This document shows, in pieces, positions 3,750 to 47,059 of a DNA stretch of 64,000 nucleotides (position 1 is its first letter; the number at the start of each line of letters is the position of its first letter). Under the pieces are notes generated by a model, which made no database searches, was not told the DNA's origin, and saw nothing but the letters and a program-made list of their open reading frames with translations. The DNA comes from Lepidodermella squamata (lineage: Eukaryota > Animalia > Gastrotricha), in the NCBI GenBank assembly GCA_047495785.1, contig JBLDXI010000033.1, forward strand, positions 2,728,001 to 2,792,000. Direction: 5' to 3'. The translations under genes and the position numbers were made by a program.

Positions 3750-4897
3750 ATGGAACTGAAAGACTTGAGTCCTATTCGTGGAATATCCCCGTGCGACCCG
3801 TGCGACGATGTCGAAGACAGTTCATCGACTGACAATTACGCGCATAGCTACACAAATGCGAATAACCAAAAATGGACGCGTCACTTGTTATATTCCTGTG
3901 GAGCTGCTGTCATTGGCAGCTCGTTTTTATGTGGCTATAGCTCGTCGGTTGTAAATGCACCCTTCGAACAAATGTCCGAATTCGTAAATCGATCATTCTG
4001 GGAGCAAGACAATAAACTGCTGTCTGAGCAGGAGCTTGACGTCCAATGGTCCCTTGTTGTGTCCCTGTTCGTCGTCGGTGGCGTTATAGGATCCTGCTGG
4101 TTTCCCGGCTACATGGCGGACAAGTATGGCAGGTAATGCGCCTTTTTGGCCCTATTATAAGATTTCGCTAAATCGAAGATTCTTTTTAAAAGAAAATTTT
4201 CCTTGTTGCTGAGCTCTGCATTTCCGATAGTGGGAGGAATTCTCAGCTTTATTGCGCCTTACACCGATAGTTACCTGCCGCTCATGATCGGCAGAGTTAT
4301 TGTAGGACTTCATTCAGGATTCATCATGGTAGTTGCACCTGCGTTGCTTGTAGAACTGGCTCCAATTCGACTCCGAGGCGCATGTGGAAGTTTCCATGAG
4401 CTCGCCTCTGTTACAGGAGAGGCGGCGGCAAACCTGATTGCCCTACCCTACATGCTGGGAACAGAAAGTTTGTGGAACATCTTGTTTCGTAAGTAGTTTT
4501 GCAGCTCCGCATCTAGTTCACTAAGAAATTATTATACCTAGTTATGATCGCAGTTATAAGCTTTGGCCATGCTGTGATGTTGTTTTTTGCATCGGAGAGC
4601 CCAAGGTGGCTCGTCGATGTCGGCCGAGATGCAGACGCCCTGAAAGGTTTGCCGAATGAAAGTAATAACATGATTCGTTTATCTTAACTGAGGATAGAAC
4701 TGAGGAAATTACGCCAGTGCCACGATGAAGTGATATATGACGAATTTCACGACATGAAGCGTCAATCAGTTGCTGAAGCTCAAGCTGCTAAAGAAATATC
4801 CTGGTCGCAATCGATAAGAGAGCGTCAAATATGGTGGCCACTTTTTCTTAGCATTAATTTGCACTTTTGTCATCAGCTGACTGGAATTGGGGCTATT
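3750..4897 (+). pseudogene. GLUT transporter copy 2, 5' half (TM1 to start of TM7), interrupted after HQLTGIGAI
   Basis: Collinear with copy 1 with introns at equivalent positions (GYSSSVVNAP, DKYGR, ELAPIRLRGACG, ESPRWL, HQLTGIGAI); homology stops at 4897. Confidence 0.88.
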
Positions 4898-4902
4898 GTT
4901 AC

Positions 4903-5366
4903 AGGCGCAAGATCCAGGCTCGCATCAGCGATTACGAAGAGACCATTGAGAACTTGCTGGCTAAGATTTCCGCGCTCGAAAAGTCGAAGCACAAGCCCCA
5001 GGGTAAGATTGAGGACATGACCGTTGAAGTTGAGCGCGCTCAGGCTTTCGCTTCTCAGGCTGAGAGGAAACAACGCCAGATCGACAAGATCATTGGCAAT
5101 TACAAGAACAAGCAGCTCGCCGACGAGATCAAGGACTTGGTCGACCAGCTGTCCGACGGTGGCAAGTCGATCCACGAGACCGAGAAGGCCTGCGCCGCCT
5201 CGAGCTCGAGAAGCAAGAACTGCAGGCGACTCTGCACGACACTGAGGCTCAGCTCGAGACCGAGGTCGCTAATATCCAGCGTTCGCAGATCGAGATCGCG
5301 CAGTTCCGCGCCGACATCGAGAAGCGCATCGCCGACAAGGACGAGGAGATAGATCAGCTGCGCTAA
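4903..5366 (+). pseudogene. Myosin heavy chain/paramyosin rod fragment (intronless, internally deleted, frameshifted)
   Basis: RRKIQARISDYEETIENLLAKISALEKSK...KQRQIDKIIG, then NKQLADEIKDLVDQLSDGGKSIHETEK and, after a frameshift near 5190, RRLELEKQELQATL...IEKRIADKDEEID: typical myosin tail heptads; GC-rich codons. Confidence 0.85.
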
Positions 5367-9188: not shown

Positions 9189-9319
9189 TTTATTCCGGTT
9201 ATGAATTCTTTGGTGTTTTGAGGAAAAATTTACACTTAAAAAATTTGCTTAGCAGTAGTTGTAATTCAGATCAGCTCCGTTCTATAAAGATGTTGATACA
9301 TCGAGTCATTCTCCAAAAT

Positions 9320-11675
9320 CTTCGCGATAAACGCTAGAATAGTGGATATATGTGATATGAACTTGGTGATGCAGTTAGTCAGTGAGCTGGAATTACCGGA
9401 TCTGGCGATTCAATTGGCGATAAGATTGGAAAAAGAGCCAGTGGTTCCGCAAAGCCGATAACATCATCTCGAACAAAAACGAAGGTGAGGGTTTCTACAC
9501 AGATCACTGGTTTATCGACCTGTTGCATTCACTCTGATGATCACGAGTCGATCGGATCCATGTATGCTGTTAGTCCGGGCGACGATGGTAACGGAAGAGT
9601 AACGGAAGAAAAAGCCGAGTTTACGCCGACTGACATTAGCAGAAATCACGAAATCATGCGTTCATTTTTCATAAAGAGCAAAGCCAGATGTTTGCGTGCA
9701 GCTTTATTCCTTGGATAATTCCAATTTGCAACAATTTCACGCCGATATCTGCGACGGCAAATTTGAGGTCGTTAGCTTTTCGAAAAGTAACAACAAGGAA
9801 AAGAAGCCAGTCAAAGCTATGATGCTGTGATATTCGCATATTTTCGAAAGTATGCGAAGTGACGAAACAAAGCTTCCAGTTTCAACGTGTAGTGTAGTGG
9901 GAAATGCAGCGGAACACTTAATGCCAGTTTGCCGCTTTTCCGGTGAATCGCCGTCGCGTTTGCTTGTCTTGTTATCGGCCTATTGCCTATTGCCTATCGT
10001 TGGAAAGTTGAACAGTAACACTGACGATTTGTTATGCGAGTCGTTGAAGTCTATGTAGATTATCAGATGAGCAATGAGTCAATGAGATGAGAACAGTAAG
10101 CCTAACAATGCTAAAACATACAGCATGCGGGGGCTAACTGTACTTTGCTGCTGACTAAGGCGTGGCAGGGTGAGCACGGTTCCTCTCGGTTTAACATCGT
10201 CGTCAACCAGGATATATTGAATTCTTAACATAGTATTCCCGACGATTTTCCAAAGCTAAAGCCGATCGAAATGTTGCAGAAGCGTTAGGTAGATGGCCGT
10301 ATTGTCCGTTCCGTTAGTTTAGCTAAATAGAAATATGGGAATTACCGCTTACGAATTACGCCGACAGATTTTGCCAAATTGAACGATTTTGTTGATAAAC
10401 TTCAGGCCAGTGGTGAAGCTTTTTGTCAAAAGTGACTTGTCGTATCACGCAACGTAGATGTTCATTAATGCTGCGATGCCTTCGTGTTAGAGTGAGCTAG
10501 AATTAGAATTGTTTACGGCTGTCGGAATTTTTGACTCAACTTCATTTCCATGGTTACTACATCTTTGCCGTCTTCGACTCGACATCGACAGTTCTGTCAC
10601 ATTTGAATTCTATGTTGTCACAATTGAAAACAGGCAGTTAGAATTGGTAGAGGTTGAGAAGTTTACAGATGACGAAGTAAAAGATAGGCCCGCTGTCGTG
10701 CTGGCACAACATCAAGATGACGTCATGACCATGGGTTCGGTCCTGATATTTTTCCAATCAAAAGAAGAAGCTCAGGCGTGGCAGTGTGAGCACTGTACGG
10801 TTCCTACGGTGAATCACCTTCGAGGCTATTGGTATTGTTATTTGCATATTGCTATGCATTCGGCAGCAATGATTATGACCTCGCTGAAAAAGTAGGTTAC
10901 TGCGGCATTTATGGCCTTTTATTAACAGATGGTTCAGATGGTGTATACACCGGAGAATCACACGGATGGGTCGACGTTGTTCCAGTCGATGTGGGTTTCA
11001 TCAGCGTTAAATAGATGGCCGTATTGTTCGTTCTGTTACTATAGCGATAATCAAACATCATCTGAAGACCATCAGCCAGTGCGTTCAAATGAGCAAACTA
11101 AGGAATCTAAGTTGGGGCTGAGCCAAGAATTTACCAGCTGGAATAATTTTACTGGAAAAAGGGCCAGTGGTTTCGCAAAGTCGACAACGTCACCTCGTAC
11201 AACGAAGCTTTGTCCATATATCCTAATTCTGATAATCACGAGTAGCTTGAAAAAGTGCCACCTCGCATGCGACTATTTAGTAAGTCATATGAAGCTGGGA
11301 TTATCGATTCGTCAAAATTTGCTAATTAGTAATAATTTCCGGGTGATTGAGCAACTGCAGAGCTCGCTGCGCCTTTTATGTAGCGACCCTGTCTTCGAGG
11401 CTATTGGTATGGTGGAGTTGCCATATTTGCAAGCAAATCGCGCGTAAATTTTTCATAAAGAAGAAAGCCAAGTGAATGCAGTCACTTCAAGTGAATGAAT
11501 GACTCATTATGACCTCGTTGGAAAAGTCGTCCGTTATACAGATTATCGAGTTGCCATATTTCGAGTCAAACTATTATCGAAAGTATGCGAAGAGACGTAA
11601 CAAAGCTCGATGCCTTCTGGTTTCAACGTGTAAAAGAGTGTTGCTTCAGCAACAAACAAGAAATCACGAAATGCC
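9320..11675 (+). repeat. Scrambled mosaic array of ~25 short diverged fragments homologous to the 13798-18991 gene
   Basis: E.g. 9412-9526~17199-17309; 9683-9818~17842-17977; 9907-9987~18270-18350; 10643-10803~16949-17108; 10807-10893~18304-18390; 11084-11143~14734-14793; 11251-11322~17987-18058; 11332-11393~14949-15008. All on the same strand and non-collinear. Confidence 0.92.
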
Positions 11676-12586
11676 AGCTAATTAGAGTGAAAGTAACCAT
11701 TATTAAGTCGGAAATGAGTGTGAAGTTTGTGTGGTCGTGTGTATCCATATAAAATTTTTTGTCGATTTCATGTATGTTTTGCAAAATTAATAGTTTTATT
11801 AATTTTTTTCGTAGGTTGTCATAACTCGCTCTTAACGATTTCGAAAGCCAGGGCTACGCAGACCGAACGTCGCTTGAAGCGCTGAAGTAACCTTCTCAAT
11901 GTTTTGAGCAACGTCAGCAACAGCTTTGATGCGAATGATAACATCGAGTCCAATGCGGCTACTGCCATTTTCATCGAATCTGTGACACCATATATCATCA
12001 ACGTGAGGTTGCAATGTTGATGTCAATCGTTTGCAAGTGCTGAAATATTGTCAGGTTAATTTTTACTTTTTGATGCATTTATGATCTCGTCTGAAGCTGA
12101 GATGTCGCTGATCAAATCCAATTACGTTAGCAAAGCCTGTTGATTGGAAAAATTGTTATGATGCCTATTCATGTCGTCAATTTTTTACAAATATTTGTTA
12201 TCTGCTGAACTAACTGAACTTTTGTTGGGTATACTAATGCTGAAACAGACCGAATTGACGTGACATTTTGCTACCAATTTTTACTTCGAGCAAACTTACG
12301 TTCTGAGCTCAAACTTTGAGATTGTGTTCGTAAATAAATGGATTAATAAATTTCAACGTTATTCCCTGGCTATTGATTGATGTTGAAATATTGAATAAAC
12401 GTTGCACAGTAAAAAGAGTGAAGTGCTTTTGTACTTGATGTATAATAAAGAATAAAAACTATTGTTGCAAACTTTGACGATTTATTTTTGAAATATTTGG
12501 AGCTGGCCTATCAAGGCATTTTCATTGGAGCTGAAATTTTGTTGGAAATACGGCATCGGAAAACGGCATATGATAGACCGACACTA

Positions 12587-13703: not shown

Positions 13704-13797
13704 TGAAATAATACAATCGTGATGTTATAACTTGCATTTCCTCTTATTATTAGTTGCTTATATATCCCTAAATATCGCAATATTTTCGTGTCGAAGA

Positions 13798-14872
13798 ATG
13801 GCGGATCCTGCTCATGTGATACCAGAGCTTAAAGTTTTCACGAAGAAAGTGTTCATCGTATGCTGGAGGGAAAATTCGCGTAAGGTCGGAGGCCACAATG
13901 TTTGCAATGTGACACTATCAGTACACTCGGATTCATCGAAGCGTTGCGCAGGGCAACTGTGGTCAACTAAAAAATCTCAATTGGATAAGGTTCAGTTCCT
14001 AGGCGTGATCAAGACAGAAGAGTTTCAAACTCCTCAGTGCATGCAAACAATCACGGATTTCTTACCCAAAACTGACCTTTACGTTGGTGGGAAGCTGTTC
14101 GGGATAAAGATCGAACTGGATTCAGCCCATGTTCACAATTTCACCATCAAGGACGATGTACGGCTCGAGAAGCTATTCCCATATCGGCATAGCATGCAGT
14201 TCGCAAATGTTTGTGATCTCTACAAAGCTCCGAAGCCTGTGAGAAACATCAATGTTGCTGCCTTGATTTTGAATGTTGGCGAATGTAAACCAGCGGTGAT
14301 ACCGGACAGGAAGCATGCAGAGATGTTATGCGAATTCGAATTTGTCGATTTAATTTGCGGCCAGACCTTCTGTAAATCAAACGAGACCGTGTTTTTATGG
14401 ATTGCTTTATAAATTTTCTATAATTATAGGGGGTAAAGCTTGGGGCAAGGAATGGCAACTGTTTTTGAGCGAATACAAAGGAAAACCTGTTATTCTGGAT
14501 AGCGCAAATTTTGCTGTCTACACTAATGGCTACGGCTGCAGTGTCGCAACAGACAAATTAACAACGTTCGATGTTGGGCCAACAGCCCAGCAGTTCCTTC
14601 CCGCTATCCCTGTTATTGCACCTTCCGTTGAAGACGGCATTTCGCCGAAGCGGGCCAGATACGCCAGTGGGCCATGCGCTCGAACTGCGTCTGAGAGCAG
14701 AGTTATCGACCAACAAGACCAACAGCAAACTAATTCAAATCAGCAAACTAAAGAATCCAAGTCTGGGCCGAGCCAGGAATTTGCCAGCTGGAAAGACGTT
14801 TTACAGGCGGCTGCCATGTTTCAATGGCCAGTCGATGAAACTGTTGAAGCAATTTTTGCAGATGATTCCTAA
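13798..14872 (+). CDS. OB-fold ssDNA-binding protein (RPA70/MEIOB-like); either a separate gene or the N-terminus of the downstream nuclease gene (1-nt frameshift near 14867)
   Basis: Exons 13798-14371 + 14430 onward give INVAALILNVGECKPAVIPDRKHAEMLCEFEFVDLICGQTFWGKAWGKEW...KGKPVILDSANF...TDKLTTFDVGP, resembling the MEIOB/RPA70 OB pattern (INV.A.V..VGE.K....DR....CE..L.D.....W). Confidence 0.6.
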
Positions 14873-14939
14873 ACATTCTAAAACTCGTTAATGTTTTTTT
14901 TTATTGTTGCTGTTGCAATAAATTTTAAATTATTTATAG

Positions 14940-17900
14940 ATGAATCCTAATTACCCTTTAATTGAGCAACTGCAGAGCTCGCTGCGCCTTTTATGTGGCG
15001 ACCCTGTCCCTTGGGACGAGCTGGAAAAAGCCTATCGGAGTTTAAGCGTACCACCGGAACGGGGAGCCCATGGGTTTGTTGCCGTTGATTATATTTTTTA
15101 CCGAATAAAAAAATTACCGTGTTATAGCAAGGTTGAGGCAGTACTATCACGCGTTGGTGTGACGTTGGACGTATTGGAAATCGGTGCATCACTCCGAAAT
15201 GGCATTAAATTCCTGTTTGCCACGCTCGGCAACCTGTTTGCTGTAGCTTTCGTTGGAACCGACGGGCAGTTGGTTCAAGTCCACTGCTTTGTGAACGCAG
15301 AAGCCGCGCCCATGCTGCCGAACTTGACGCTTAGCGAGATGTTGGCCATTTGGCACAGAGCCCGGTTTTATGTCTATCAGGTTCTACAATAATATTCATG
15401 ACAATAAGCAATATTCTAAAAGCTAACCTTTCCAGATGACAATCGATGACATCCTGGTGAGTAAAACTGCCGCCGAACTGACAGTCGCTCATTTAGCCGT
15501 GGCGTCAGATTTGGAACAAACGTTCAAACTGCTCTATCGTTTCGGCGAAAGGCTCAGGTTTCACGCGATTCCTGCACTACAACGGCGTCCTGAAATGACC
15601 GAAGTGGCTGCAAGGATTCTTTGGCATCTCGGTTATCGTGAAAATGCACTTCGAACGGCCTTGGCCAATCCGAACACGCCTAAACTAGTCACGTTTGTAA
15701 GTTGAACACTTTTCCAAGTTCCGAACGAATTCCAAGTTTGATGTAACATTTTCAGCTCAAGCATCCATCAGCTCGTCCTCATTTGTTGGCATTGTGTCGT
15801 GATGACGAAACGTGCCGCCTTAAAGCCTTCCAGCTTGACCTCATCCAAGTTGAAGATGTCGCTGATCCAACACCTCAGATCGCGAATTCGGCCAACGCAG
15901 ACGACCCGCCACGCTTGGAGTCACCTGAAGTGGCTACGTCAAACGCGTCAAACGTGCCTCTTACGATCCCGCCCAGTTCGATCATTCGATCAGACGAACC
16001 GCCACGCTTGGAGTCACCTGGAGTGGCCACGTCAAACGCGTCAAACGTGCCTCTTACGATCCCGCCCAGTTCGATCATTCGTCAGGTATATTTATAATAA
16101 ATTTATCTATATTCAAAATTACAAAAACAATCTTTATCAACAGACCGCAACGCCTCGGCCCTTAACTGGTTCGATTTCACGTGAAAACGTTACCTTCACT
16201 CAAGTGGTTATGAAAACCAAACCAACTTCGAACGCTGTAAGTGAGGAGGCCGCGCTGCCTCGTGAGCCAGAGAATGTGCCATCTACTTCAAATGGAATAG
16301 ACCAGCCGGCGAATCGAAAGGTTTGCAACAACAACAACACAACTTTTTGCATTGTTAACAATATTGAATTCTTAACAGAGTATTCTCGACGATTTCCCTA
16401 TGCTGAAGCCCATCGAAATGCTGAAGGCGACGAAAACACTGCTCAGCTCAATCAACAAAGAACATGTCGAGAAAGTTGACTTCGCCAAAATGTATTTGAA
16501 CGCACGTGAAGATTTTGGCACAGCGGTTGACAATTCAATTCATGCTTCAAAGCTCCGGAAATGTTCATTCCCCAGTAAGGCCATGATCGACAAGCCGATC
16601 AACATGATTTTGGCTTATCATGAGGAGCTGGGATCAATGTATGCCGTTGGACCAGGGACGGATGGAAACTGCGCTAGGCTGCTGAATGGTCCCAGCAACA
16701 TTCCAGCTAGACAGTTCGAAAATTCGCTGAATTTGGCTGAATTTTTAACGTCACTTCACTTCGATGGTTACTACATCATTGCCGTCTTTGACTCAACATC
16801 TCCATCGACCTTTACAATCGAAAATCGTCGAAGTGTGGAAACCTTTGGTCAGCTGAAAAACTGTCCTAATGGTTACTACAAAGATATTCGCAGAATTGCC
16901 GAAAAGCATCGTTCTCGGATAGTGAGTTTCGAATTCAGTTACGATGACTTGGAGGAGGTGGAGAAACTTGTTGATGGCCAACTAAAAGATAGGCCCGTCG
17001 TCGTTCTGGCGCAACATCAAGATGACGTGATGACCACGGGTCTGGTCCTAATTTTTTTTCAAAATGGCGAGGGAGCCCAGGCGTGGCAGTGTAGGCACTC
17101 TACAGTTCGTCTCGGATCAAAATCGTCGCCAACTAGATTGTTTTCGCCAGCAGAAGCAGGCAAGGTCAAGCCTAAGTGGTCTATAATTAAGCGCCTCGAT
17201 TGGCGTTACGATTGGAACAAGGGCCGGTGGTTTCGCAAAGCCGACAACATCACTTCGTACAACGAAGCTGACGGTTTTTACACCGATCATTGGTTCGTTG
17301 ACTTGTTACCCTCGTTCCGTGATGGCCGCTTAACATCAACTGATGCTGCCAAGTACAACGATTTCGTTGACAAATCGTTGATACTCCAGTACATTTCGAA
17401 GAATACCAAATCCGAATACATCCGCGATTGGATTTTCACCTGTACTCGCCGCAGGCCAATGCTGAAACTTTTCGGTAAAAGCGACATATCGTTCCATGCC
17501 ACCTTAACGTTCGTTGACGCTAATGAGAAGTCGAAGGCCCTTACTGCCGTGACTGAATCCGGCGACTCAATCCGGGCCGCGTTCGGGAAAAACGCTAAAA
17601 TTCTCGACATGAAAGACATGAATTCGGCTATGCAGTTAGCCAGCGAAAAGTCGCCAGATCCTGGCTTACTACTGCTTGACCTGCCTAGACACATCACTCG
17701 CGAGGAGCTCATCAGCTACCTACCAAACGGCTTCGATGTACACTTGGTGGAATTGCCTTGTTTCCAAGCAAATCACGCGTACATTTTTCACAAGGAACAA
17801 ATCCAAGTGAATGCGGTCATGGAAAAGCTGTCAAATGAGTGGCCAGATGTTCGCATTCAGCTTTATTCGTTAGACAATTCGAAATTGCGGCAATTTCAAG

Positions 17901-18991
17901 CTGACATCCGCGATGGCAATTTTGAGGCTGTTAGCTTTTCGAGAGGTAGCAATAAAGAAAAGAAAACAGTCAACGCCAAAGCGCCAAAATTGCCACCTCG
18001 AGTACGACTTTTCAGTAAGTCATATGAAGCTGGTATTATCGATTCGTCAAAATTTGCCTCTTCATTGCACGATCCTCTTACTGCGTACGCAGTTGTCGAA
18101 AGTTTGCGTGGTGCCGAAACAGAGCTCGCTGCCTTCTGGTTTCAACGGGTGGTAGAGTGCTACTTCAGTGGCATGTGGGATGCATGCACCTATTCGTTCC
18201 TGAGGCATCAATACGGCGATGCTTTCGTGGAAGGTGTTACAGCCGCGAGGTTCAAGCTATTGAGATATACAGCGGAACACTTGATGCCATGTTGCCGAAT
18301 TTCCGGTGAATCACCTTCGAGGCTCTTGGTATTGCTATCCTCATATTGCCATGCATTCTGCAGCACTGATTATGTCCTCGCTGAAAAAGTCGACCGTTAC
18401 ACTGACGACCTCTTTTCAGGTCGCATGACGCCTGAAGTGAGATATGGTAAGAAATGGTCTCCGCTCTTCCAAGGCGTCGAGTCCAGATTCGTCTTAAGCG
18501 GTCTTCATCCCTGCCAATGTTGCAGAAATTACTGCTGTGAAACTAACCACTGCTCCACTCTGGTTTTTCTATCGGAGGTTACCAAAGGACAGCCAGTAGG
18601 CTACAGCGGCACCTATGGTCTGTTAATAACAGATGGTTCAGGTGGTGTTTATACAGGAAAATCCGCTGTGACCTTGAGGCGTGCCAGCAGCCACAAATCG
18701 CATTCGCTCCAGACAATGTCGAATCCAATAGCGGCAAGTAGATGGCCTTATTGCGCGTTCCGCTACTACAGCGATAACGCATGGGCAAGAATGCCTTTCC
18801 GCCTCTTGTTCGAAAAGGCGATGTGTATGAACGTCGCCGGTGATCGAGAGCGATTTCTACGAGAAACTTTTTTCAATGCTACCAACAAGCCTCACCCAGA
18901 CTACCTCGCGATCCACAATATCGATCCGAACGCGGTTGTTAACGAGGACGACGAGTTTCAAGACGACGGTGATGAAGAGGAGTACATGTAG
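14940..18991 (+). CDS. Large orphan protein (1273 aa from 14940) with three RRM-like modules, a Cys cluster and a C-terminal GIY-YIG-like endonuclease; exons 14940-15380, 15436-15696, 15756-16085, 16144-16320, 16379-18991
   Basis: Phase-0 GT-AG introns keep the frame open. GIY-YIG-like SGTYGLLITDGSGGVYTGKSAVTLRRASSH...LFEKAM...FFN (~18605-18880); RRM-like LLLLDLPRHITREELISYLP...HAYIFH, SLILQYISKNTKSEYIRDWI...HATLTFVDANEKSKAL, GLVLIFFQNGEGAQAW; CQCCRNYCCETNHC; acidic tail. Confidence 0.75.
15898..16081 (+). repeat. Two near-identical 93-bp (31 aa) tandem coding repeats
   Basis: cagacga.ccgccacgcttggagtcacctg...cccagttcgatcattcg starts at both 15898 and 15991. Confidence 0.92.
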
Positions 18992-20215
18992 CCATCGGTT
19001 CAACATACGACGTCTTGTGTGTGACGTTTATCGCCCAGTTTGTTTCACTAAGACTGTAAAGTAATACATTTGATTCATTTGATGAGTGCTATATTCAATA
19101 GCTAAGACTGTAAAAGTTGCAATGAAATAAAGATAATTGGTTTATAACCTACTGCTGATGTTGTACTGCAGTGACGTGAACGAAGCATCGGTAAACATTT
19201 TCGATCGACCAAGTTCGAGCGTTTTAAACTGACAAAAATACACAAAATAGGAATATTGCGATATATCATGCGAACAAATTCGAACCTGAAATCACCAGCA
19301 GCAGCAGCAGCAATTATTAATGGTTGCCAGTAGTATAATGAAACGTGTCGCGATGGTTTGTTCAAATTCGAAGGCAATGATATACATCAATAGGGCCGCA
19401 TTAATTAAGAACATTAACAGGCCATCATCATCGTCATCATGCCAGTAACTACTTTCAATAACAGCCTATAGAAATAGGTTCATTTCATGAGACGTACAAT
19501 AGGACAATATGGACTCATTCTGCGAGCCGCGGCTGACTATCGTACGTCTAAGGATGGTTGGTTCTGCCATTTCTAGCAGACGTAAAAAAGTTCATCAGTT
19601 GAGTTGAGTTTAACTGACGTGAATTGGCTTTTATTAGCTATCACAGCCTTCACTTCCACCGGTCGATTTCATTCAGCTTCAGCTTGATTTGCATAATTGC
19701 CTCGTTTGCGTCATTTCTTGCGCTAGTTTTCCCCCGGGGCGGCCTAAAACCTGACGAAAAATCGATCGAAATTGGCGCAAAAATCAATGACAAGAAATCG
19801 GGGTTACACTGTATCAGTGCTCCGATTTTTTTTCGTGACTCGAAAGTGTCTGCCACTGGAAAGAAATTGCAAAAAAGTGTACGCCAATTTGGAAATTTCT
19901 TAAAAAGCTTGATTTTTCGGCGATTCGCCTCTGAAAATGCGAAAAATGAGCATCTCGAAGCTGGTTTTGTCTCCAAATAGGAAGGAATTGTGGGTCTCCT
20001 TCTAACTTCCTTCCGGACAGATTACGGATTCCAGATCATTGAACATTGAAAATGGGGCCTAATGAGGATGGGTTTAGGAGAATAGGAATAAAAGGAAAAT
20101 GGATAATCGCGAGCGAAGAGAGCAACATTTTCTGAGCGTGGTCCAGTGGGCAAAAATCGGAACACTGCACTGTATTAAAGTACAGGGTGTTCAAGAAATA
20201 ATGGCTAGATATATA

Positions 20216-20636
20216 TATATGTCGTATCGTATAAGGCAATCCCTCCAATGGCCGATAGAGATATCTCAATGAGCAATCGGAAATTTACTTTCTGACTGAT
20301 GTTTTCATCAGCCTTCAGGTTATTGAATTATGATCTATCACATATTAAAGAGCCCGAATAGCCCTATCGATCAGACTTTTAATTGATTAATAAAGAGTTT
20401 AAATTGATCCAGAAGGCCAGAAGACAGTTACAGTGAAAATGCGCTAGCTTTTTAGAAACACATAAAACTCATAGATGGGGAACAAGTTATTAGGGATTCT
20501 GTAATCTTGCTTGGTTTCCAAATAAAATAAAATGATTAAAATAACTGAAAATGACATTGGGAACAATTCGGATTGCTCATAGATGGATATCTCAATCGGC
20601 TAATGGAAGAAAATGCCTTATACGATACGACATATA
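20216..20636. mobile_element. MITE with ~70-bp imperfect terminal inverted repeats
   Basis: tatatgtcgtatcgtataaggca...atgagcaatc mirrored by gattgctcat...tgccttatacgatacgacatata. Confidence 0.8.
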
Positions 20637-20849: not shown

Positions 20850-21707
20850 TTCTAGCTAGCCAGTAATCCTTATGAGCCCGGCCATTTTACCGGCCTTATA
20901 TACCGGCCGGCTTGTAGTAGTATGATGTATGCCATAACAAGCGAGGCGAAGCCGAGCTATCTATCAGCTTGCTTATTATAAATTAGCTTGCTTTTTGCTT
21001 GCTTCTACTAATACTACTCCTACCAGTTTTGTAATATATATGCTTGCTAATAATGCAACTTGCTTAACCGAGAGATTTGCAATTGCTTGCTATAAATTGA
21101 ATATAAATCGCCTAAATTTAGTATCCCTAGATAATAATCAGCTTGCTTCTTACAAACTTGCTATTGTCTATTGTCTTGCTCTATCTACTTATCTAATATC
21201 AAGTTGCTAATTATCAAATAGCTTGCTATCTGCTTGCTCTTATCACAATACTTATTATCATGTATATCATCTTGCTATCTCTTGCTATCTCTATCTCGCT
21301 AATAACTAACTTGCTATCTAAGTATTGACTTACTATACACTATAGATTACTCATATTTCGCTTGTTATCATCTAGTATATATAAACTAGAATCATCGCTT
21401 GCTATAAATTACACAGATACCGCTAGCCATGTTTGTAACTTGCTATGGTAGCTTGCTTTTAACTTGCACGTTCTTTAGCTCTTCTCGATCGCGCTTGCTA
21501 GCGATATATTCGGTTGTCAGCGACGCTTGCTTCAAAAATCTGCATCGTCTTTTTTTTACATTTTGTTTTAAAATTAAATAATAAAGTGTTTTTAAATTAC
21601 GGAAAATATTTTTCTTATTTTATTGACGAAACTGTTATAGGTGCTCTATGAGAACCCCGGAAACCGGCGGCTTGCTTAGCAGCGGCTTGCTAGACTTCGA
21701 GCTTGCT
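20850..21707 (+). repeat. Dispersed same-strand CTTGCT motif array (~20 copies) at the right end of the insertion
   Basis: gcttgct/cttgcta recurring every ~20-60 bp between 20967 and 21707; also gcgaggcgaagccgagc at 20941. Confidence 0.65.
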
Positions 21708-22957: not shown

Positions 22958-25900
22958 TTAGGAAATGTTGGCGTTGACGCCATTTTTCTTCAAAGCTTCG
23001 CGGAGTTGCTCCTTCACAGCGTCAGCATTGTCCTTTGGCAGCGGCGGCGCCGTAAGCTGCGTCGAACCTTTCTTCGCACTGCCCGCATCCGAGATGTTAC
23101 TCTTAGGCGCAGCAGTATCGGCACTCAGCCCTGTTCCTTCGTAGATTAGCTTGTACTTGAGCGCACTCTCAGGTTTTCCAGGGTCACTAAAAATGTCAAG
23201 TTCACCTCATGATTATCAATATGGATTTCTAACCTTTCCCAATAGAACAGATACTCCGTTGCACCAAAACGGCCCTCTTTGACAGCAGCTCGCCTGATAA
23301 CGGCTGTATTCGCGTCTTTGTCGACCAAAATAGATCGCATATTGCCGAGCGAGACTGCCTGTAGCACGAACTCGTAGCCATCTTTAGGTAGCTTCTTTGC
23401 AGCTACTTTGCGCGCGCCCGATTCACTTCGGCTGCCCTCGATCGTCATTCGTAAACCGATCGGCCGAGCAACAGTATCATCCTCGGGGCCGTACAACTTG
23501 ACGTAGTAATCGATGACTGATAGCAAACATTTAGAAGTTATTATTTAATTAATTTTGTGAAAAACACTTACATTGAGTGGTGGGATGTTTAAACCGGACA
23601 ATCGGGTGCTCGCAGCAGCCGTCATTTGGTTTGCCGCACAGGTGCGCAAAGTTGAAGTGAAGCTGTTCCCCGCTCTCCCGATCGGTGGCATATACATCTT
23701 TTATACACCATGTAGCAGAAGAGGCATCTTCGACGCGAAGTTTCAAAAGATCCTTCAATTTCGCCTCCTCTAGCGTGAACACCTGTCCCTGGGTCGTTAC
23801 CGTTTCGGCCGGATTCAAAGTCAGCGTCTCCTTGGCTTGAATGCTGGCGCTAGATCCGCTAAACAGAATTATGGTCACAGGCCGCGAGGGGCCAGGTTCA
23901 GCAGTTGTGATGATTCGACAGTCGAAATTGCCACTGAAATGTTCCGGCGGATTGTCAAGCACTCGTGGTTGGTCCCAAACAGGCGTAAAATCAACATAGA
24001 TTTTACGATCGCCGGTTCCGCTGTCCAACCAACGGAACGCAGGGAACACTAGTACCGGCTTAGAGATGTCCCCAGCATCGCGAACTTGACATTCGTTGAT
24101 AAACCAGCCGAGACCACGACCAGTCGATAGATGGCCCAAACCGATAGTTTTGACAGTACCCACTGAAACAATAAAAACATCGCAGATATCGCGTGCTCCG
24201 CGCTGAAACATTTTCGGCCTGTCGCTTTTAAGAAGGAACACTTTTCCGGAATCTCCCCACGTGCCCTGGATATTCGCGTAAACAGCTGAATCTGGATCTG
24301 CGCGTTCTTTGTCACCAGTGAATATGCACACCTCGTAACCAACCTCAGCAATCGGAGCCAGATCAGGTCTTATGACACCGAAATCTGTACTGCCAGCGCC
24401 ACCCGTCGCGGCACTAGCCTCAAGAGCACGTATCGGCGCAGCGAGCAGCTCTTGCTTTGTCTTCGTGTCAGAAAGGTTAACCTGATCTATTTTCCAAGAA
24501 AAAGCTCCTTCACTCTGCACAGCGACTCGAAGTTTAACTATCGGACCAATAGCTCCGAAAGACGTCTGGAAAGGTTGCGGCTTCGCCAGGTTACCGGCTA
24601 GTTTCAGCAAATCAACCGGGTCTGATTGCTTGCCGCTTGCTGAGTAAGCGGTAAGTGTCAGCGCTGTAGCTTTTCCCGATGGCGCATTATTCACCGTTAG
24701 CTGTACTTTGTAGGAGCCTGATGATGGCTGCGGTCCTGGCTGGAAGCGCCTGTCGTATTGAAGCGCAACGCCTGTCATTTCCGTTTCCGGATGCTTGAAT
24801 TTCGTCACTTGCCCACTCTGCACGAATTGCACATCAGAGAATACTGCCTCGAAAACATCGTGCTCTGTCCTGCGAATTCGAATCCGCTTCACTTGCCAGT
24901 TGCCACTGGAATGCGCTGACTCGGCGAAACTGAGGTGCGCTTCTTTGATATCGCCAAGGTCAACAGCAGGCATGAAAAAAATGTCCGTAGTACCCGGCTT
25001 GCCAAACACCTGGCCGCCACCAGTCTGCGAACGCGAACGGAGCAAGTAACGTTCGCCTGTGTCGCCCTCAGAACCAACAATCATGCATTTGACACTGCCG
25101 TTTTTCAAGCCACCGCTCGCTTTAGAAGCGCCTCCTGTTTCGATAATCAATATGTAGGGCAAAGTCACTGGCGTGTTCGGTGGGGCATTCGATTTTGCCG
25201 CAACAGATTTGTTGCTTGCACCAGAGGTGGGCGCAGGAGGCGGCTGAACAACGGCCAATTCGCGACACAGACTGCCATCTTCGGCTTCGGGACCGAGCCA
25301 CCGGTCCAGGTAAAATAAATATTGGAAAGCTGTTGCTCCTGAAGCGTCCGTCAATTTTACCTATATGAAGACATTTATAGATACATGCAAAAGTCTAACT
25401 AATGAAATCCTCACCCAATCGAGATTGAGCGGGTCGGCTTCCCCTTCCGGCGAGTACGTGTCAATAGAAATTTTGCGCAGCTGACCGATGTCTCCAGAGT
25501 TGTATTCGAATTCAGCCACAGCGTTTGCAGCAAAATTCTCTCCAGCTCTGACACCATTAGAGAGCTTGGCTCGTTTCGATTTACCGCGGCTGCCGTACAT
25601 TGTCATGTATACCTCGGTGTTGTAGCCGGGTAGGGTGTCTGGACCTGACTTCGTTTTCACCTTCCATTTTTGCGGAATTTTGGGAGCCTTCGGGTCAAGT
25701 TTGGTCAGCTGATCAGCGGCAGGTATTGTATCGACGAAACGCAGAGTCCGTTCAATCTAGTAAAATCACAAAAAACTAAAGACTTTTCCCATTCGAATAA
25801 TCTCCTTCCTTACATGCCCATCATCTTCCCAAGGGTCCAGCCATCGACCGCAAGGGAATATTAGTGAATTATCAGGATCGGTCGATGCTGTAACTCTGAT

Positions 25901-28900
25901 GATATCGACAAAAGTTCCTCCACCGTGACCCTTAGTATCACAGCCAATCGTCAGCTGCTTCAACCCCTTCAGATCAATAGCCTCGACCGGGAATGGCAGC
26001 ATTTTGCCTCGAGTGCATACAGCTTTCTTCTTCGCAGCTGTATAGAACAGATAGCGTTTGCCAGTATCACCTTGTTCGCCGGTGATACGCACCCATAGCG
26101 GGGATTCGCTTTCTGCGAACCAGTGATCGCCAATAACGACGCCGACGTAGTAGATAACCGTGCGTTGCTCCGGTTTCTTGCCCTTCACCGAAAGCGCAGC
26201 CTCGCGATCTAGGTGACTGTCTGGGGCTTTTTCAATTGATAACCACTTGTCGAACGTGAATAGCATTTCCTCTTTCGTCGCAGTATCAACCAGCTTCACC
26301 CAATCCACGTGCCAGTCGAATGGTTCGAACTTATTAGCGTGGCCGAGTCGAACCTTGTAGATTTTGCCGAGTCCCAGAGCTTTCACTGGAGCTTCATCCT
26401 CTTGATCAGGTTGCCAGGGCGTCGTACTTTTCGGTGTCAGTTCGTTGTCGTTTGTGTGATTTTGATCGCCATAAATCGCTAGTGTTATCTTCTTGCCAGC
26501 CGGAGCTTTCCCGGAATCCTTGGCTGTTTTTATAATGACCTTATATTCACCCTCTGTTATGAAAAAACAAACGGCTGAATAAAGACTATTTTTTAGTGAA
26601 AACGATTACGTACTAGACTCGCCGGGTGGCTCGCCAGGATACAAAAATCGCTCCGTTTTGCCGTCGTCTTGGGCTGTGTCGAACCATTTTGAGCACGGGA
26701 AGTACCACTGTTTTTCCTCTCCCTTAATTTTTGTGGTCACAATGACTCTTTCAATATACCATCCTGCACCCTCAGCAATGTCGCCATGGCCTATGAAAAC
26801 CTTTTGAAGTTCATCTAAATCGACGGCCTGAAAAAATGAAATGTTATAGCTATTGGGCCCATGGTTTTTATATGGTCTCGGCTCACCTCAACGTGAAAGA
26901 TGTCGATTTGGTTGGAACGGAATTTCGTCTTATTATTCCGAGACCAGTATAGGATTCGCTTGCCAGTGTCACCTCGTTTGCCAAACAACTGAATAAAACA
27001 GCGGGCATCCGTTTCAGCCCCCGGCAGCTTGCCCGTAAGTATTGAAACTTCGTAGATGAGAATGGGCAAGTTCGCAGATGGCGATGGCAACTCGCGCCAA
27101 ACATCTTTGTCTTCATGCACTCGGGTAAGCCAGCGACCGCATTTATACAGCGTAAGATCGCCAGTCTTGTTGTCCTTGATGCGAACTTTTTCGACATACC
27201 AAGTTGAAGTTTCATTGTCATCCTCTTCATGCCCGAAACGGATCTTGTACATCTTCCCTGGATTTTCCCCGTTCAACTTCACTTGGAAAGTGTCAACTTT
27301 GCCTGGTTTGAAGAGCGATGTATCTTTCTTGCGATTCAGGACCAGTGGGCCAACGATGTTCTTATCGCCATAGGCCCATAGTTCGATGCGATTCGTCTGA
27401 TTGCCACACGCAGGCTCCGCATTGCCAGTCGTTATCTCAACTTCCCAGTCACCCGGCTCTTTGGGTTCCTCTTTTTTCTCTTCTTCCTTCTTCTCTTCTT
27501 TTGGCGGCGGTGCCTTGTCAACTTTAAGCACCTAGGAAATCAAACGAATATAAATTAACCATGAAAGTTCGTGGAAAAAAGCTCAATTACCCTTTCGATT
27601 TTGCCATCATCTTGACTGCGATCGAACCAACGTTTGCATGGAAAGAACCATTTACGCTGCGTGGGTTTTTCAAGCCTTACGACGACGTAGTCTACGAACC
27701 AACCAGCGCCTCGGTCCTCAGACTTGTGGCCAAGCAGGACTTCAGTCAGCTCATCCAAGTCGACAGCTTCAACCTGGAACTGATCGACCTGGCCTAACTG
27801 AAACATCGTTTTGTTGTTGAGGGACTTGTACAGTCGTCTAATGCCGGTATCCCCACGCCGACCGCGTATCTCGATGTAGGGCTCTGCCTCAGTATCAGCA
27901 CCTGGCTCTTTGCCAGTGGCTACTTCGACTTTGTAAATGAAAATTTCGAGAGGCGTCTTTCCCGGTCGAACTACCGGCAACTCGCGCCAGACATCCAGAT
28001 CTTCGTGGGTACGAGACATCCAACGGGCGCAGGGAAATTGAAAGACGGCGTTGTTGAAGAGATCTTTCATTTTGACGCGCTCGCAAAACCAAGGATCTGG
28101 GGTATTTTCGACTCGACCAATTCTTATCTTATACAACTCGCCGACTTTGTAATCGATGAAAATCTGCACGCAAATGGGCAATGTAACGGCGAATTTCACA
28201 TTTAATTAATGAAACAAACCTTGAATTCGTCCGTCTGGCTGAGTTTGAAATGTCCCGATCTGCCTGACCCTAAAATAATAGGGCCAGCCTTGCCTCGATC
28301 GCCGTAGCCATAGGCCCACAGCACTACAGTATCCTGCGTTTCCATGTTGCCTTCGCTACCAGTTGTCGTCCATATATTCCAATCACCCTCTAATTACATA
28401 CATGAAATAAAAAAATAGATTAGCAAAGGTCAGGTTGCCAATAAACTTGGCCTGTGTAATAAAAAAATGTCATAATATTTAGGCGAAATACTCGGATAAA
28501 TGAAAACGAATTTTGCATTTAAAATAAATTATCCGAAGCTAAAAGCTAAAAAATAGTCGTGAAACCAAAATCGGTAGTTTCACCATCATTCGGAACCAAA
28601 GCTCAACTCAACGTGAGAAATAAAATTATCAGGTTAGCTAAACCTTTTCCGGCTGGTTCGTCTACAAAGCGGGTGATGATGCGCATAGGATTTTAGTTCA
28701 TAATCGTTCATAATCGACGGTATTTGAAAACACACCCTTTGCCGGTGGTGGACCAGGTCTTAGAATTCGTTCGATCAAACCATCGTCCTCGTACTTGTCA
28801 AACCACCTATATTTTGTCACATTTAAAAAGTGCGAACGAATGGAAAGCGACGAAAATCTTACTTATTGCAAGGAAAGTACCACGCCATGCTTGATGCTTT

Positions 28901-31900
28901 TGTTTGCTCGGAGGACAAGAACACGGCGATACGCTCAAGGAACCAGCCGCCACCTCGCTCTGTGTTGTTGTGCCCGACAAGCAGCTCTTGTAGCTCATCA
29001 AGATCGACAGCTTTAAGACGAATAATGCATCAGTTCTGCAAGTTTGTTACGTCTCTCCTTACCTTCAATTTCAAACTCGTCCAGTTGGCCATTGCGAAAC
29101 TTTTTGGTAGTCCCATTCAGCTTTTTCCACAACACTCTAGGGCCTGAATCCCCACGGCGGCCTCGGATCTCAACGTAGATACGCGCGTCCGTTTCAGCGC
29201 CTGGCTTCTTCCCGGTATAAACCTCCAACTTGTAGCGATAAACTAAATTTGATCAGTTATGAAAGGATTCACTAAAATGGGACTTGAAAATTCCACCTGG
29301 TAACGGAGTTTGTCCTGGCCAAACAGCTGGCAACTTTAAATTTAACAGCCAAGTTGAGATAGATTGTTACTAATGAAACGCAATTGTCTAACCTCCCGCC
29401 AAACGTCCTCGTCGTCACGCTTCCTTGACATCCATCGGCTGAAAAATGTTGACAATGAGTGCAATCACCTCTGCAGAAAACCATGTAACCTACTGGCAAT
29501 CGAAATTGAGCACATATTTTCCTGTCCTGTTTTTCGCCTTAACCTGGGTAACACGACAAGCATAGAATTAATCAGATTCATATTAATTTTCATCTGCTCA
29601 CGTTTTCCAAAAACCAGCCCTCATCAGTGTCTTCACGGCGACCTATTCGAATTTTATAAAGCTTGCCCAACATAGGCGAAGGCCAGTTAACCAGGAACTC
29701 GTCGGTTTGTCCTAAATCGCAAAACTTTTTAAAAGGTCCATTCCATCTCATGATTAAATTGCCAACCAGGTTTGAAATATTTATTCGAATTAGCAGGAGC
29801 CAATGTTACAGGTCCAACTCGGCCCTGAACGCCGTACGCCCACAGCACAACAGTATCCGTAGTAGCCATCGCCTGTTCCGGTCCCGTAAGAGTTATGATG
29901 TCCCATTCTCCATCTAGTTAAAGTATAGTTGTAGATAAGCAACAGTGATACAGTAAAAATACCTTTGCTAGATTTTGCTGTTTTGAGTGCGTGAAAGCAA
30001 AGTCATGATCATAGATATTGCCGAGGCAAGAGGAACTTACGCCTTAGACCTGGTCTTAGCACCCGCTCGATTTCCTGATCACCTTCGGCTTTGTCGAACC
30101 ACCTTAATTAAAAATGATGATGGCCATCTTCGTATAATATCGTAAAAAATACTTGTCGCAAGGAAAGAACCATTCCTGTTTAACCGGGTATTCACAGCGA
30201 ACTGTGACTGATTCGATAAAGAAACCCATTCCCGGATTTTCGTTGTGGTGACCAATCAGTATTTCTTTCAACTATTTAAAAATCAATAGATATCGACAAC
30301 GGAGCTTGCAGAAAATGAAAACCAACATCATCGAGGTCGACAGCTTCAACCAGGAAAGTATCCTTCTGACCAGCCAAGAATTTAGTTTTATTATTGAGCG
30401 AGAAAAACAGTTGTCGATGGCCAGTGTCTCCACGGCTACCGCGCAATTCGATATGAACCTTTGTTTCAGGTTTAATCGGGCGCTGGCTGCCAAGTTTCAC
30501 GTCGACGAAGTATTTGCAAACTGAATAATCGCCAAAATTGGCATGCCTCTATAACTAGCTCAATGACATTACTTTCTAGAGGATCCGTGCTTGGCCGGAT
30601 AGCCGGGCTTTCGCGAACGACATCGAAATCTTCCTGCGTTCGCGACATCCAACGCCGGTACCAGAACGTTAGACTTTCCTCTGTTTCCAAGTTCTTCATT
30701 ATGACCTTTTCGACGTACCACTCATCGCCAGCAACGTTGTCCAGGTGCCCAATTCGAATCTTGTATATCGATCCGATTGAGGTGTTTATCACGACCTTGA
30801 AATTGTCTGTAGTGTTGACTCTGAAGTTGCCGGCATTTCCACTGCCCAAGGCTAAAGGTCCGACTTTTGAGACTCGTCCGGTGCCGTACACCCACAATTC
30901 GGCTTTTCCTTTAAGGCTAGCCTGTCCTGTTGTTACCCAAACATTCCACTCCCCAGCTGAAAATTTACAGTAGAATTTAGAATGTAAGGAATTGAAGTCG
31001 AAGGCTAGCAACTCACGCTGTGGGAGGGCAGGTGGCGGCTCAGCTGGCTTTGGCGGCGGTGGTGCCGGAGCAGGCGCGGGTGCAGGCGCCGGCTGCTGCG
31101 GAGGATATGGATAAGGCAAGTCTTGGGAGAAGTTGAGTTAATTAATTTTATCCCATTTAGGATAATGAATCGACATTACAAGGAAAAGCTGGAGCAGGAG
31201 GCTGAGCAAAAATTATGATGGGCTGACCAGGCTGTTGTTGGTACATAGGTTGTTGAGGTGGAAGGTAGGGTTGTTCTGGAATGAGATACAGATTAAAATT
31301 GATGTTCATATACCTAAGTGAGATTGCTCGATTGATCACAAAACTTCTAATGTCTATAACACGAACAGAAAACGTAAGCTATTGAAACTATAATCGCGGG
31401 GTTATCCGGAAACGCTGGAATGCAGGGATTCAATAAACAACCTCGGACTCGTTGCGGCTCGTCTGGTGAACAAGCGTTTCCGTAAAATCAAGTAACAACC
31501 ACGACAATAATAAAACAAATTATCCGAAACTACGCTGCTATCAAACTAATGCATGCTTTAAACTATATGTATCGCTAAGAAAAATCATGATTAAATTGAA
31601 ATTAAAATTAAAATTAAATCTGATCTAAAAGGTCAGCATCGAATTTCTCAAGCGCAAACGACCTCTGATAAAGTGGATACGCTGTGGTTCGTCTGTTCGG
31701 CCGTCAAAGTATCAAGCAGTTTAAAAGCCCAATTTAAATTAAGTTCCTATTGCTATATCAAATAGATGCTATCTACTTCTATATTCTATACTATTCTATA
31801 CTAACTATATTAACGGATCTACGATTCAAATCAATAAATATTAGCGCTATATGTTCATTTGTAAAAAAATTAAAGTATGTTATCTAACGTACTTCTCGGC

Positions 31901-34900: not shown

Positions 34901-36048
34901 GGAAATACGAGCTCCTCGCCTGTGTCGATATCCCGCATACGAACTTCCTCGACAAACCAGTTCGGCGAAACTGTGATAATGGTCGTATAGTTAAAAGTTA
35001 AATATCGCAGCTAGAATACAGCCTGTGAAACTTACTGCCCGAGTTGTCGTGCGACAGCCGGATTTTGTAAAGTGGTCCGAGGCTACCGAGATTGACATCG
35101 AACTCATCTACATTACCGGTCTGAAAGGCAGTGCCGTCCCCGAGTCCTAGTGCCAAAGGTCCGGCTACACCCGACTTGCCATAAGCCGAGAAAAACACGC
35201 GCGAAGTGGTGCCGGCGGAGGGTTGGTCGCCCGTAGTGACCCAGATCTTCCAACGACCTCGCGACCTATAGTCACCTCGAGTTTTTACACCAAGTTTCCG
35301 AGCTGCCTGTTGCGGGCGCCCTGCCAGCTGCGAATGCCGTCCGGTTTCGAGTTGCCCGAACATAAGCACATCGGGTCCGTTGAGCAAAGACGTTAGACTC
35401 GCGACTGGGGCGCCGTCGAGCGTATACAGCTTGCGAGCATAAGCCCCTGGAAACAGCTGCGCGACGTCGTTGAGCACTTGCTCGAATGACTGAGTCGTGC
35501 GCCGATTCAACAGGTAAGTTTGCTTGTCGCGCTGGTTGTTTGAACGCACTATGGTGATGCGCTTGGGCGGCAGATTCTGGCCGAGTCGCTTCAATCCGTG
35601 GCCTGAATTTCGCCGCGGTGTCGCCCACTTCTCATTGTCACCGACTTTGCCTTCGCAAACATATTGTCCTCCTGTAAGCAAAAGGAATAAATGAGACTTT
35701 CCCTCAAGTCCTTCAAGCCAAAACAGTAGTCAATAGAATAAATTTTAATATAAGCGCTTACGAACCATCTTCTAATTCTTCGAGTGAAGTTATTTCACGT
35801 TTCGTGCCGGCGACGTAAACATGCCGAACACCGAATAGCATCCCAGGAACCTTGTCACTGATGTCGTCAAGCAGAGCATCGAAATTCCGATATTTTTTCT
35901 GAGTTAAAACTATTCGAAGAGGGCGGACGTTTGGTCCAGAGGCGCCACTTTTAAAGAAATAAACATTTTTGCCGATTTCAGGCTCGTAATCAGTCGGCGC
36001 GTAACGCCCTGCGGGACCCAGCTGGGCAAACGGGTCGTCGTAGTACAT
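22958..36048 (-). CDS. Doublecortin + multiple PLAT/LH2 domain protein (long RP1-like / LOXHD1-like), many exons
   Basis: Two N-terminal DCX domains (VYFFKSG...RNFDALLDDISDKV; RTTQSFEQVLNDV...KLYTLDG), repeated PLAT motifs (TG...AGT.A.V...YG..GD.G.R.L; LYKIR.GHD; W...KV; F.C.RWL...DDG), a beta-trefoil-like insert at ~33300-34200 and Pro-rich linkers. Confidence 0.88.
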
Positions 36049-46785: not shown

Positions 46786-47059
46786 TATAAAATCAAATCC
46801 TAAGCAAATAGAGATGAAATAAATGTTCAAGCAGAAGCTATCAAATAAGAGAAACGAAGGCTACAAGTGCACAGAGATAAAATCTCTGGGGTAAACGATG
46901 GCGTCTTATGTTGAACCCGCAGAAAAGCGAGACTAAGATTTTTGGTCATCAAGGAAATACTCTGATCTTTCGCCTCGAGCTTTAAGCGATTCCTCCGGTC
47001 AATCAGGCGCGGCCTGCATCTGGATCCGCAGTTGTCCTCGTCTCACCACATAGACGCGT

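Follow-up and report, generated by a model that had tools for sequence, protein, structure and literature searches.

A constrained, multi-copy gene family of the gastrotrich Lepidodermella squamata with a possible divergent GIY-YIG-like segment

A 64,000-nt stretch of the Lepidodermella squamata genome (assembly GCA_047495785.1, contig JBLDXI010000033.1, positions 2,728,001 to 2,792,000; hereafter the window, in whose own coordinates all positions are given) was analyzed with respect to a plus-strand coding series at 13798-18991, in which an earlier note had seen one long gene combining an OB fold, three RRM-like modules, a cysteine cluster and a GIY-YIG-like nuclease. We conclude with high confidence that the locus is genuine, selected protein-coding sequence and belongs to a lineage-restricted, multi-copy family under purifying selection. 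The series probably comprises two genes, here called A and B, and the remains of further copies upstream make it very likely that members of the family arise by head-to-tail duplication and then decay, with A and B copied together. A nuclease mechanism for the A/B cassette, in which B would carry a divergent GIY-YIG-type catalytic core, was assigned a probability of a little more than one in three (about 0.37).

The series runs from an ATG at 13798 to a TAG at 18989-18991, bounds that agree with the earlier note, and consists of seven consecutive open stretches whose frame is restored by five GT-AG introns at 14372-14429, 15381-15435, 15697-15755, 16086-16143 and 16321-16378 (58, 55, 59, 58, and 58 nt, respectively). 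Exon 1 of gene A (13798-14371; 191 codons plus one base) begins with the ATG and is followed by intron 1 (GTAAAT...TATAG), which accounts for the frame change between the open reading frames (ORFs) at 13732-14412 and 14402-14872. Exon 2 of gene A (14430-14872), to which an upstream fragment at 11064-11147 corresponds, has a Q/S/T-rich tail and ends with a TAA at 14870-14872. Five exons of gene B were delimited from ORFs and an enumeration of splice joins: exon 1 (14940-15380; 147 codons with an ATG start, matched by an upstream fragment at 11325-11393), exon 2 (15436-15696; 87 codons, after the 55-nt intron), exon 3 (15756-16085; 110 codons), exon 4 (16144-16320; 59 codons) and exon 5 (16379-18991; 870 codons plus the TAG), which is exon 7 of the whole series. 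This last exon contains an 863-codon ORF from an ATG at 16400, the numbering of which is used for residues below; the ORF cannot be a product of chance because a run of this length has a probability of about 1e-22 per start at the local composition. Spliced A (338 aa, two exons) and spliced B (1273 aa, five exons) were without internal stops, and the GC content at third codon positions (GC3) was 0.51-0.52 at the locus vs. 0.48-0.57 in the neighboring genes. An AATAAA at 19126-19131, 135 nt past the stop codon of gene B, is a likely polyadenylation signal. Exon 3 of gene B also carries a 93-bp, in-frame tandem duplication (15898-16085, plus strand), the two copies of which are 95-97% identical and encode a 31-aa Pro/Ser-rich repeat; the duplication is evidently recent.

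The series had been described as a single spliced gene, and two co-oriented genes 67 nt apart are the simpler and probably the correct model, because the in-frame TAA at 14870-14872 closes the second stretch, an AATAAA follows at 14917-14922, the next stretch opens with an ATG at 14940 and no splice of standard size bridges the spacer (14873-14939). When all frame-preserving GT-AG joins of exon 2 to the next exon were enumerated, none was shorter than 97 nt and those found had poor donors. An AG stands immediately 5' of the ATG at 14940. The alternative model, one gene with an atypical intron, is less likely.

The family is recorded in an array at 9303-11686 (plus strand), in which blastn and further matching to the gene detected 21 fragments of exons 2, 3, and 7 of the series and one intron end. 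The fragments are 45-190 bp long and contain stops and frameshifts; 13 pieces detected by blastn are 76-91% identical to the gene at the DNA level. All 21 fragments lie on the strand of the gene (P 5e-7), and their order forms seven ascending runs (P 0.004 vs. random order), so the array is best read as the remains of about seven copies, arranged head to tail and reduced by massive internal deletions. One fragment includes, at 10214-10231, a copy of the last 18 nt of the intron that precedes exon 5 of gene B, which indicates that DNA rather than mRNA served as the template for copying, and the mixture of exon 2, 3, and 7 fragments within one array indicates that A and B were duplicated as one unit. 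Comparison of the fragments with the intact gene gave a ratio of nonsynonymous to synonymous substitution rates (dN/dS) of 0.25, and in the nucleotide-detected matches 14, 9, and 24% of the first, second, and third codon positions, respectively, were mismatched. These two patterns argue that most of the divergence arose while both lineages encoded protein. One frame remains open through fragments of exons 7, 2, and 3 of decayed copies, giving a 172-codon ORF at 10929-11447 (plus strand) that could yield a chimeric peptide if transcribed.

The array reported next to the gene therefore exists, and it consists of debris of decayed tandem copies; nothing suggests a functional guide or spacer array. 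To the strongest form of the earlier proposal, an RNA-directed or homing-type nuclease with array transcripts as guides or targets, only the position of the gene beside same-strand fragments of itself and one RRM-like module lend any support. The fragments vary irregularly in length, lie end to end with neither repeats nor spacers between them, contain disrupted frames and are ordered as expected for deleted tandem copies. No structured RNA family was found: Rfam gave nothing for the whole window at the gathering score and nothing relevant, including no hammerhead ribozyme, for 8-22 kb at E<=5. No result supports an enzyme of this kind, and we regard it as extremely unlikely.

The nuclease mechanism depends on the C-terminal part of B, in which a GIY-YIG-like segment was located at 18608-18886 (plus strand). 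The signature string YSGTYGLLITDGSGGVYTGKSAVTLRRASSH (18602-18694) has the form GxY-x11-YxG-x7-R-x3-H, and all of the elements listed in the earlier note are present, namely GTY (G737-T-Y739, starting at nucleotide 18608), VYTGKS (V750-Y751-T-G753, 18647), RRASSH (R761-x3-H765, 18677), a glutamate (E805, 18812) and, after it, candidate asparagines (N811, N827, and N830). A paralog fragment in the array reads GIY...YTG. The spacings resemble those of I-TevI: Tyr-Tyr 12 vs. 11, Tyr-Arg 10 vs. 10, Arg-His 4 vs. 4 and Arg-Glu 44 vs. 48, with R761 at Y751+10 and H765 at R761+4 as in I-TevI (Y17, R27, and H31). The family calls for 10-12 residues between the two motifs on a beta hairpin, and the 12 residues that separate GTY739 from VY751TG agree with this at the level of sequence. 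A GIY-YIG profile was constructed from 11 annotated proteins (T4 I-TevI, I-TevII, SegA, SegB, SegC, SegF, SegG, and DenA; Escherichia coli UvrC, Cho, and YhbQ), and a hidden Markov model (HMM) search with it, with all filters off, placed the signature string on GIY..YIG..R..H with 4.6 bits (p 0.003), a score reached by 0.2-0.5% of 3000 shuffled sequences. An hhalign comparison with GIY-YIG selected the same segment (P 0.0012, probability 19%). A consensus-style composite pattern with the correct spacings was found in none of 20,000 shuffled sequences, the pattern having been written after the sequence had been seen.

Several results weigh against this assignment. The aligned part of the profile is its first third only, and the Glu and Asn residues were placed by neither HMM nor hhalign, so that the half of the segment containing E805, 44 residues past R761, and the Asn candidates is without profile alignment. 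Curated profiles (Pfam, NCBIfam, PADLOC, and PHROGs) gave no GIY-YIG, RRM or OB match at E<=10, and none of the approximately 10 PHROG families that real GIY-YIG proteins match was matched by B. AlphaFold2 (AF2), run without an alignment on the last 145 residues, gave a mean predicted local distance difference test score (pLDDT) of 42, and the Foldseek matches of this model were meaningless. Lastly, in a 64-kb window that had been inspected by eye for many families, a p value of 0.003 for 870 residues is not an uncommon result. The signature thus scores better than random sequence and is spaced as in I-TevI, but it is not recognized by any curated profile, and a true GIY-YIG core in B is a tentative assignment that falls short of even odds. 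Two weak matches to the signature segment were the only ones obtained from NCBIfam, PADLOC and PHROGs. These were PADLOC PDC-S14 (E 0.021) and phrog_20962 (E 0.011); the latter was matched by none of 10 real GIY-YIG proteins and was discarded as giving no support.

Homology searches gave no relative. At E<=10, Pfam still had no match to any exon or to any of the segments claimed as domains, and PDB sequence searches, a further point against the nuclease assignment, were likewise without a match. No homolog was found in a word-indexed search of 5.8 billion protein clusters with the 863-aa ORF and exon 1, nor when the 863-aa ORF was compared exhaustively, by HMMER, with 1.84 billion representatives. 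Scans of metagenome and viral contigs, tblastn against phages, a degenerate DNA pattern derived from the peptide that is best conserved and exact-protein look-ups detected no relative. GNL2 is a conserved protein, yet the one encoded in the window shares only 40-44% identity with its best library matches, protostome GNL2 proteins that share 51-68% with one another, indicating that the host belongs to a long-branch lineage without a close relative in the protein libraries. For this reason, each failure to find a homolog is weak evidence. The earlier statement that the gene has no recognizable host ortholog holds for the libraries searched and carries correspondingly little weight.

A rival explanation is that A and B are orphan genes of restricted taxonomic range, that neither folds as OB, RRM or GIY-YIG, that the motifs are chance matches picked out by eye and that the protein is not a nuclease. 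The silence of the curated libraries and of the PDB at E<=10, the silence of the PHROG families of real GIY-YIG proteins (phrog_20962 not being one of them), the lack of similarity among the proposed modules and the weakness of a targeted p of about 0.003 in a window this large and with so many families in view all favor this explanation. The composite signature, post hoc as its pattern was, and the convergence of HMM and hhalign on exactly the signature segment are harder to reconcile with it, as are the modeling of module 3 as an RRM-type unit and the position of the C-terminal signature behind a non-random Cys cluster, as in the endonucleases of Penelope-like elements (PLEs; PMC8557442). 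Profile silence is also expected for fast-evolving domains in a host this divergent. We consider the orphan explanation a serious possibility, at somewhat less than even odds.

The Cys cluster CQCCRNYCCETNHC (18512-18553, plus strand) listed in the earlier note is real and non-random: 6 of the 20 Cys residues of the 863-codon ORF fall within 14 residues, and none of 20,000 shuffled sequences had a comparable cluster. It is preceded by HP, may form a metal-binding knuckle, and ends 19 residues upstream of the GTY motif. In the endonucleases of PLEs, the linker upstream of the endonuclease core has the form CX2-5CxxC or, in Hydra, CxCX5C, and PLEs that encode an endonuclease have a CCHH motif, two Cys of which lie between GIY and YIG, that is absent only in the Hydra clade (PMC8557442). 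B resembles the Hydra clade in having a C-terminal signature with a Cys-rich linker just upstream that fits CxCX5C (as CQCCRNYCC, a fit easily obtained in a string so rich in Cys), no Cys between Y739 and Y751, and R, H, and E candidates downstream (PMC8557442). B differs in having no detectable reverse transcriptase (RT), no hammerhead ribozyme, several introns, about 400 residues encoded by upstream exons and no significant profile match to any GIY-YIG model. The stand-alone GIY-YIG endonucleases of rotifer Terminons resemble B as intron-bearing invertebrate genes without an RT in the same ORF (PMC6431247, PMC8557442), but these carry CX2-5CxxC and CCHH inside giant telomeric retroelements, whereas B lacks CCHH and has ordinary host genes as neighbors.

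The likeness raises the question of whether exon 7 is itself a decayed or domesticated Penelope-like ORF, with a degenerate RT, a Hydra-type C-terminal GIY-YIG domain and truncated tandem copies as the array. PLEs carry introns and form tandem or truncated copies, which would be consistent with the introns and array observed here. The exon length of 2.6 kb, the RT-like strings MWDACTYSF, SGESPSRLLVLL, and RYTDDLF (18395) recognized by eye with RT-like (HIV-like) spacing, and the combination of a Cys linker with a GIY-to-YIG interval that is free of Cys, which recalls the Hydra clade with its CxCX5C linker and no CCHH (PMC8557442), also fit. Against it, the RT models of Pfam, NCBIfam and PADLOC were silent. 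An RT profile constructed from 13 sequences (Brt, four RTs of diversity-generating retroelements and eight group II or other RTs), which is prokaryotic and of limited power, scored -1.7 bits, with 10-20% of shuffled sequences doing as well and the RYTDD string not giving the best local match. The RT-like interpretation of 18200-18410 was discarded on this score. The interval from RYTDD to the Cys cluster is too short for a thumb domain, no hammerhead was found, part of an intron is included in the fragments, and several introns and upstream exons belong to the locus. We consider a Penelope-like origin of the whole exon distinctly unlikely.

The residues GGVYTGKS within the signature also match the Walker A pattern GxxxxGK[ST], in which case the C-terminus would be a P-loop NTPase and not a nuclease. 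No P-loop family was detected with Pfam, NCBIfam or PADLOC, the loop would contain a bulky Val and Tyr and lie three residues too far from the preceding strand, and the approximately 110 residues left downstream lack a Walker B-like hhhhD/E. The Walker A interpretation was therefore rejected for want of an NTPase profile match and for poor geometry, and an NTPase at this position is very unlikely.

If B does have a GIY-YIG core, its arrangement differs from those of the characterized proteins. I-TevI, the Seg proteins, UvrC and Cho share the first half of the signature and its spacing (Tyr-Tyr 12 vs. 11, Tyr-Arg 10, and Arg-His 4) with B, but their domain is N-terminal and detected by profiles, whereas that of B would be C-terminal with its second half unaligned. 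SLX1 has an N-terminal GIY-YIG domain and a C-terminal RING/PHD finger, and ANKLE1 has ankyrin and LEM domains with a C-terminal GIY-YIG domain. Both are encoded, like B, by eukaryotic, intron-bearing genes that would combine a GIY-YIG core with a metal-binding or other accessory module. B differs from them in having no RING, ankyrin or LEM domain by Pfam and in having its Cys cluster before the signature and not after it.

The three RRM-like modules proposed for B fared unequally. The AF2 model of the 863-aa ORF had a mean pLDDT of 34; only residues 420-492 (17657-17876, plus strand), the third module, were modeled at moderate confidence (pLDDT 57-71), with a beta-alpha-beta-beta-alpha-beta topology. 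The best Foldseek matches of this part were PII-like folds, designed ferredoxin folds and several RRMs with E values of 0.014-0.06, none being <=0.001. The fold is common to many superfamilies. We conclude with moderate confidence that module 3 is a predicted domain of the ferredoxin-like type, with which an RRM would be compatible. Modules 1 and 2 are without support: Pfam RRM_1 matched none of the three claimed segments at E<=10, and in pairwise local alignments the similarity among the three units was no better than that of shuffled sequences, which counts against a repeated RRM architecture. In the profile and structure checks by which the earlier note had proposed to refute its reading, curated profiles detected none of the three families, the targeted GIY-YIG tests were marginal, and AF2 with Foldseek on parts of B gave no significant GIY-YIG, RRM or OB fold. 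The structural blanks do not count as a refutation because the models (mean pLDDT 34 and 42) were too poor.

An OB fold of the RPA70/MEIOB type has been claimed for A at the motif level. The OB-like, TFWGKAW-type motif (14190-14580) spans intron 1, with its first half in exon 1, and splicing creates ...GQTF-W-GKAWGKEW. The intron splits the putative domain, and profile, PDB and protein searches with each of the two OB-like halves and with the whole of exon 1 gave no match. No similarity was found between the two halves, a further point against the assignment. RPA domains are a recurrent feature of Helitron-like elements, one family of which has captured a GIY-YIG domain (PMC11417382). The A/B pair resembles the RPA-like OB genes of these elements in that a separate OB-like gene stands beside an enzyme gene and is copied with it as one unit (PMC11417382), but differs from them in that no Rep or helicase occurs anywhere in this window, the OB assignment being at the motif level.

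The cassette might thus be cargo of a Helitron-like or other DNA transposon, with the same-strand mosaic being a product of transposon-mediated gene capture. The location of all array fragments on one strand and the presence of a second mosaic upstream at 3750-5352 would agree with such an origin. No Rep, helicase or transposase domain was detected in the long ORFs of the window (33 ORFs of >=150 aa in the case of Rep (HUH) and helicase domains), the neighbors are ordinary host genes with the same GC3 as the locus and the fragments are ordered as decayed tandem copies would be. In the sole flanking inverted repeat (13000/20180), complementarity is 74% and the best-matching part lies on the inner side, and this candidate pair of terminal repeats was taken as a chance match on that ground. 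We consider transposon cargo decidedly improbable. The absence of RT, Rep/helicase and DDE domains noted earlier was borne out by the library scans, and as far as its sequence can tell the locus is no recognizable PLE or Helitron, though parts of it resemble accessories of both.

The rest of the window has the appearance of a compact animal genome, with neighboring genes that have long exons. Domain searches identified a sugar transporter (1914-2612), a bZIP gene (37062-38138), an ADAM gene (51183-53755) and, on the minus strand at 23549-35681, a large gene of an unusual composition in which many PLAT/LH2 domains are combined with a doublecortin domain. The second mosaic mentioned above (3750-5352, plus strand) consists of a truncated second copy of the sugar transporter (N-terminus of Sugar_tr) that runs into a myosin-tail ORF (Myosin_tail_1, E 7e-8). 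GNL2 (44974-46830, minus strand), identified by protein comparison, is nearly without introns. Approximately 2 kb downstream of gene B, 15 exact GCTTGCT heptamers, all on the plus strand, occur within 740 bp (20967-21707), where the near variants ACTTGCT and TCTTGCT are also frequent; the whole window contains 22 copies of GCTTGCT vs. a chance mean of 9.8. An element of about 420 bp at 20216-20636, with 34-nt inverted repeats at its ends that are 85% complementary, looks like a miniature inverted-repeat transposable element.

In the nuclease mechanism favored here, B would be a nucleic-acid-handling enzyme in which the central ferredoxin/RRM-like module and the Cys6His metal cluster hold the substrate, and DNA is cut by a divergent catalytic core of the GIY-YIG type (Y739, Y751, R761, H765, and E805) made up of the last 130 or so residues. 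A, which lies just upstream and is duplicated with B, would supply OB-type single-strand binding. The cassette may be selfish or derived from mobile elements, combining a PLE-type endonuclease with a Helitron-type, RPA-like accessory, and would now reside among ordinary host genes. A more far-reaching proposal, which we consider unlikely, is that A and B constitute an undescribed eukaryotic selfish or defense cassette, in which an intron-bearing GIY-YIG nuclease without an RT is joined to RRM-type modules, a Cys-cluster DNA reader and an OB partner and is spread by head-to-tail duplication as a free-living relative of the PLE endonuclease.

The origin of the PLE endonuclease is an open question, and homing endonucleases with Zn-finger-like motifs were reported not to be found outside PLEs (PMC8557442). 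If the proposal is true, a Cys linker and a GIY-YIG core in a protein without an RT would make B a candidate donor or descendant of the PLE endonuclease. The locus also illustrates how limited sequence searches are for a lineage of this kind. If the nuclease mechanism fails, the locus would still be a clean case of an orphan family that is constrained and has multiple copies, from a branch of the animals that has been poorly sampled.

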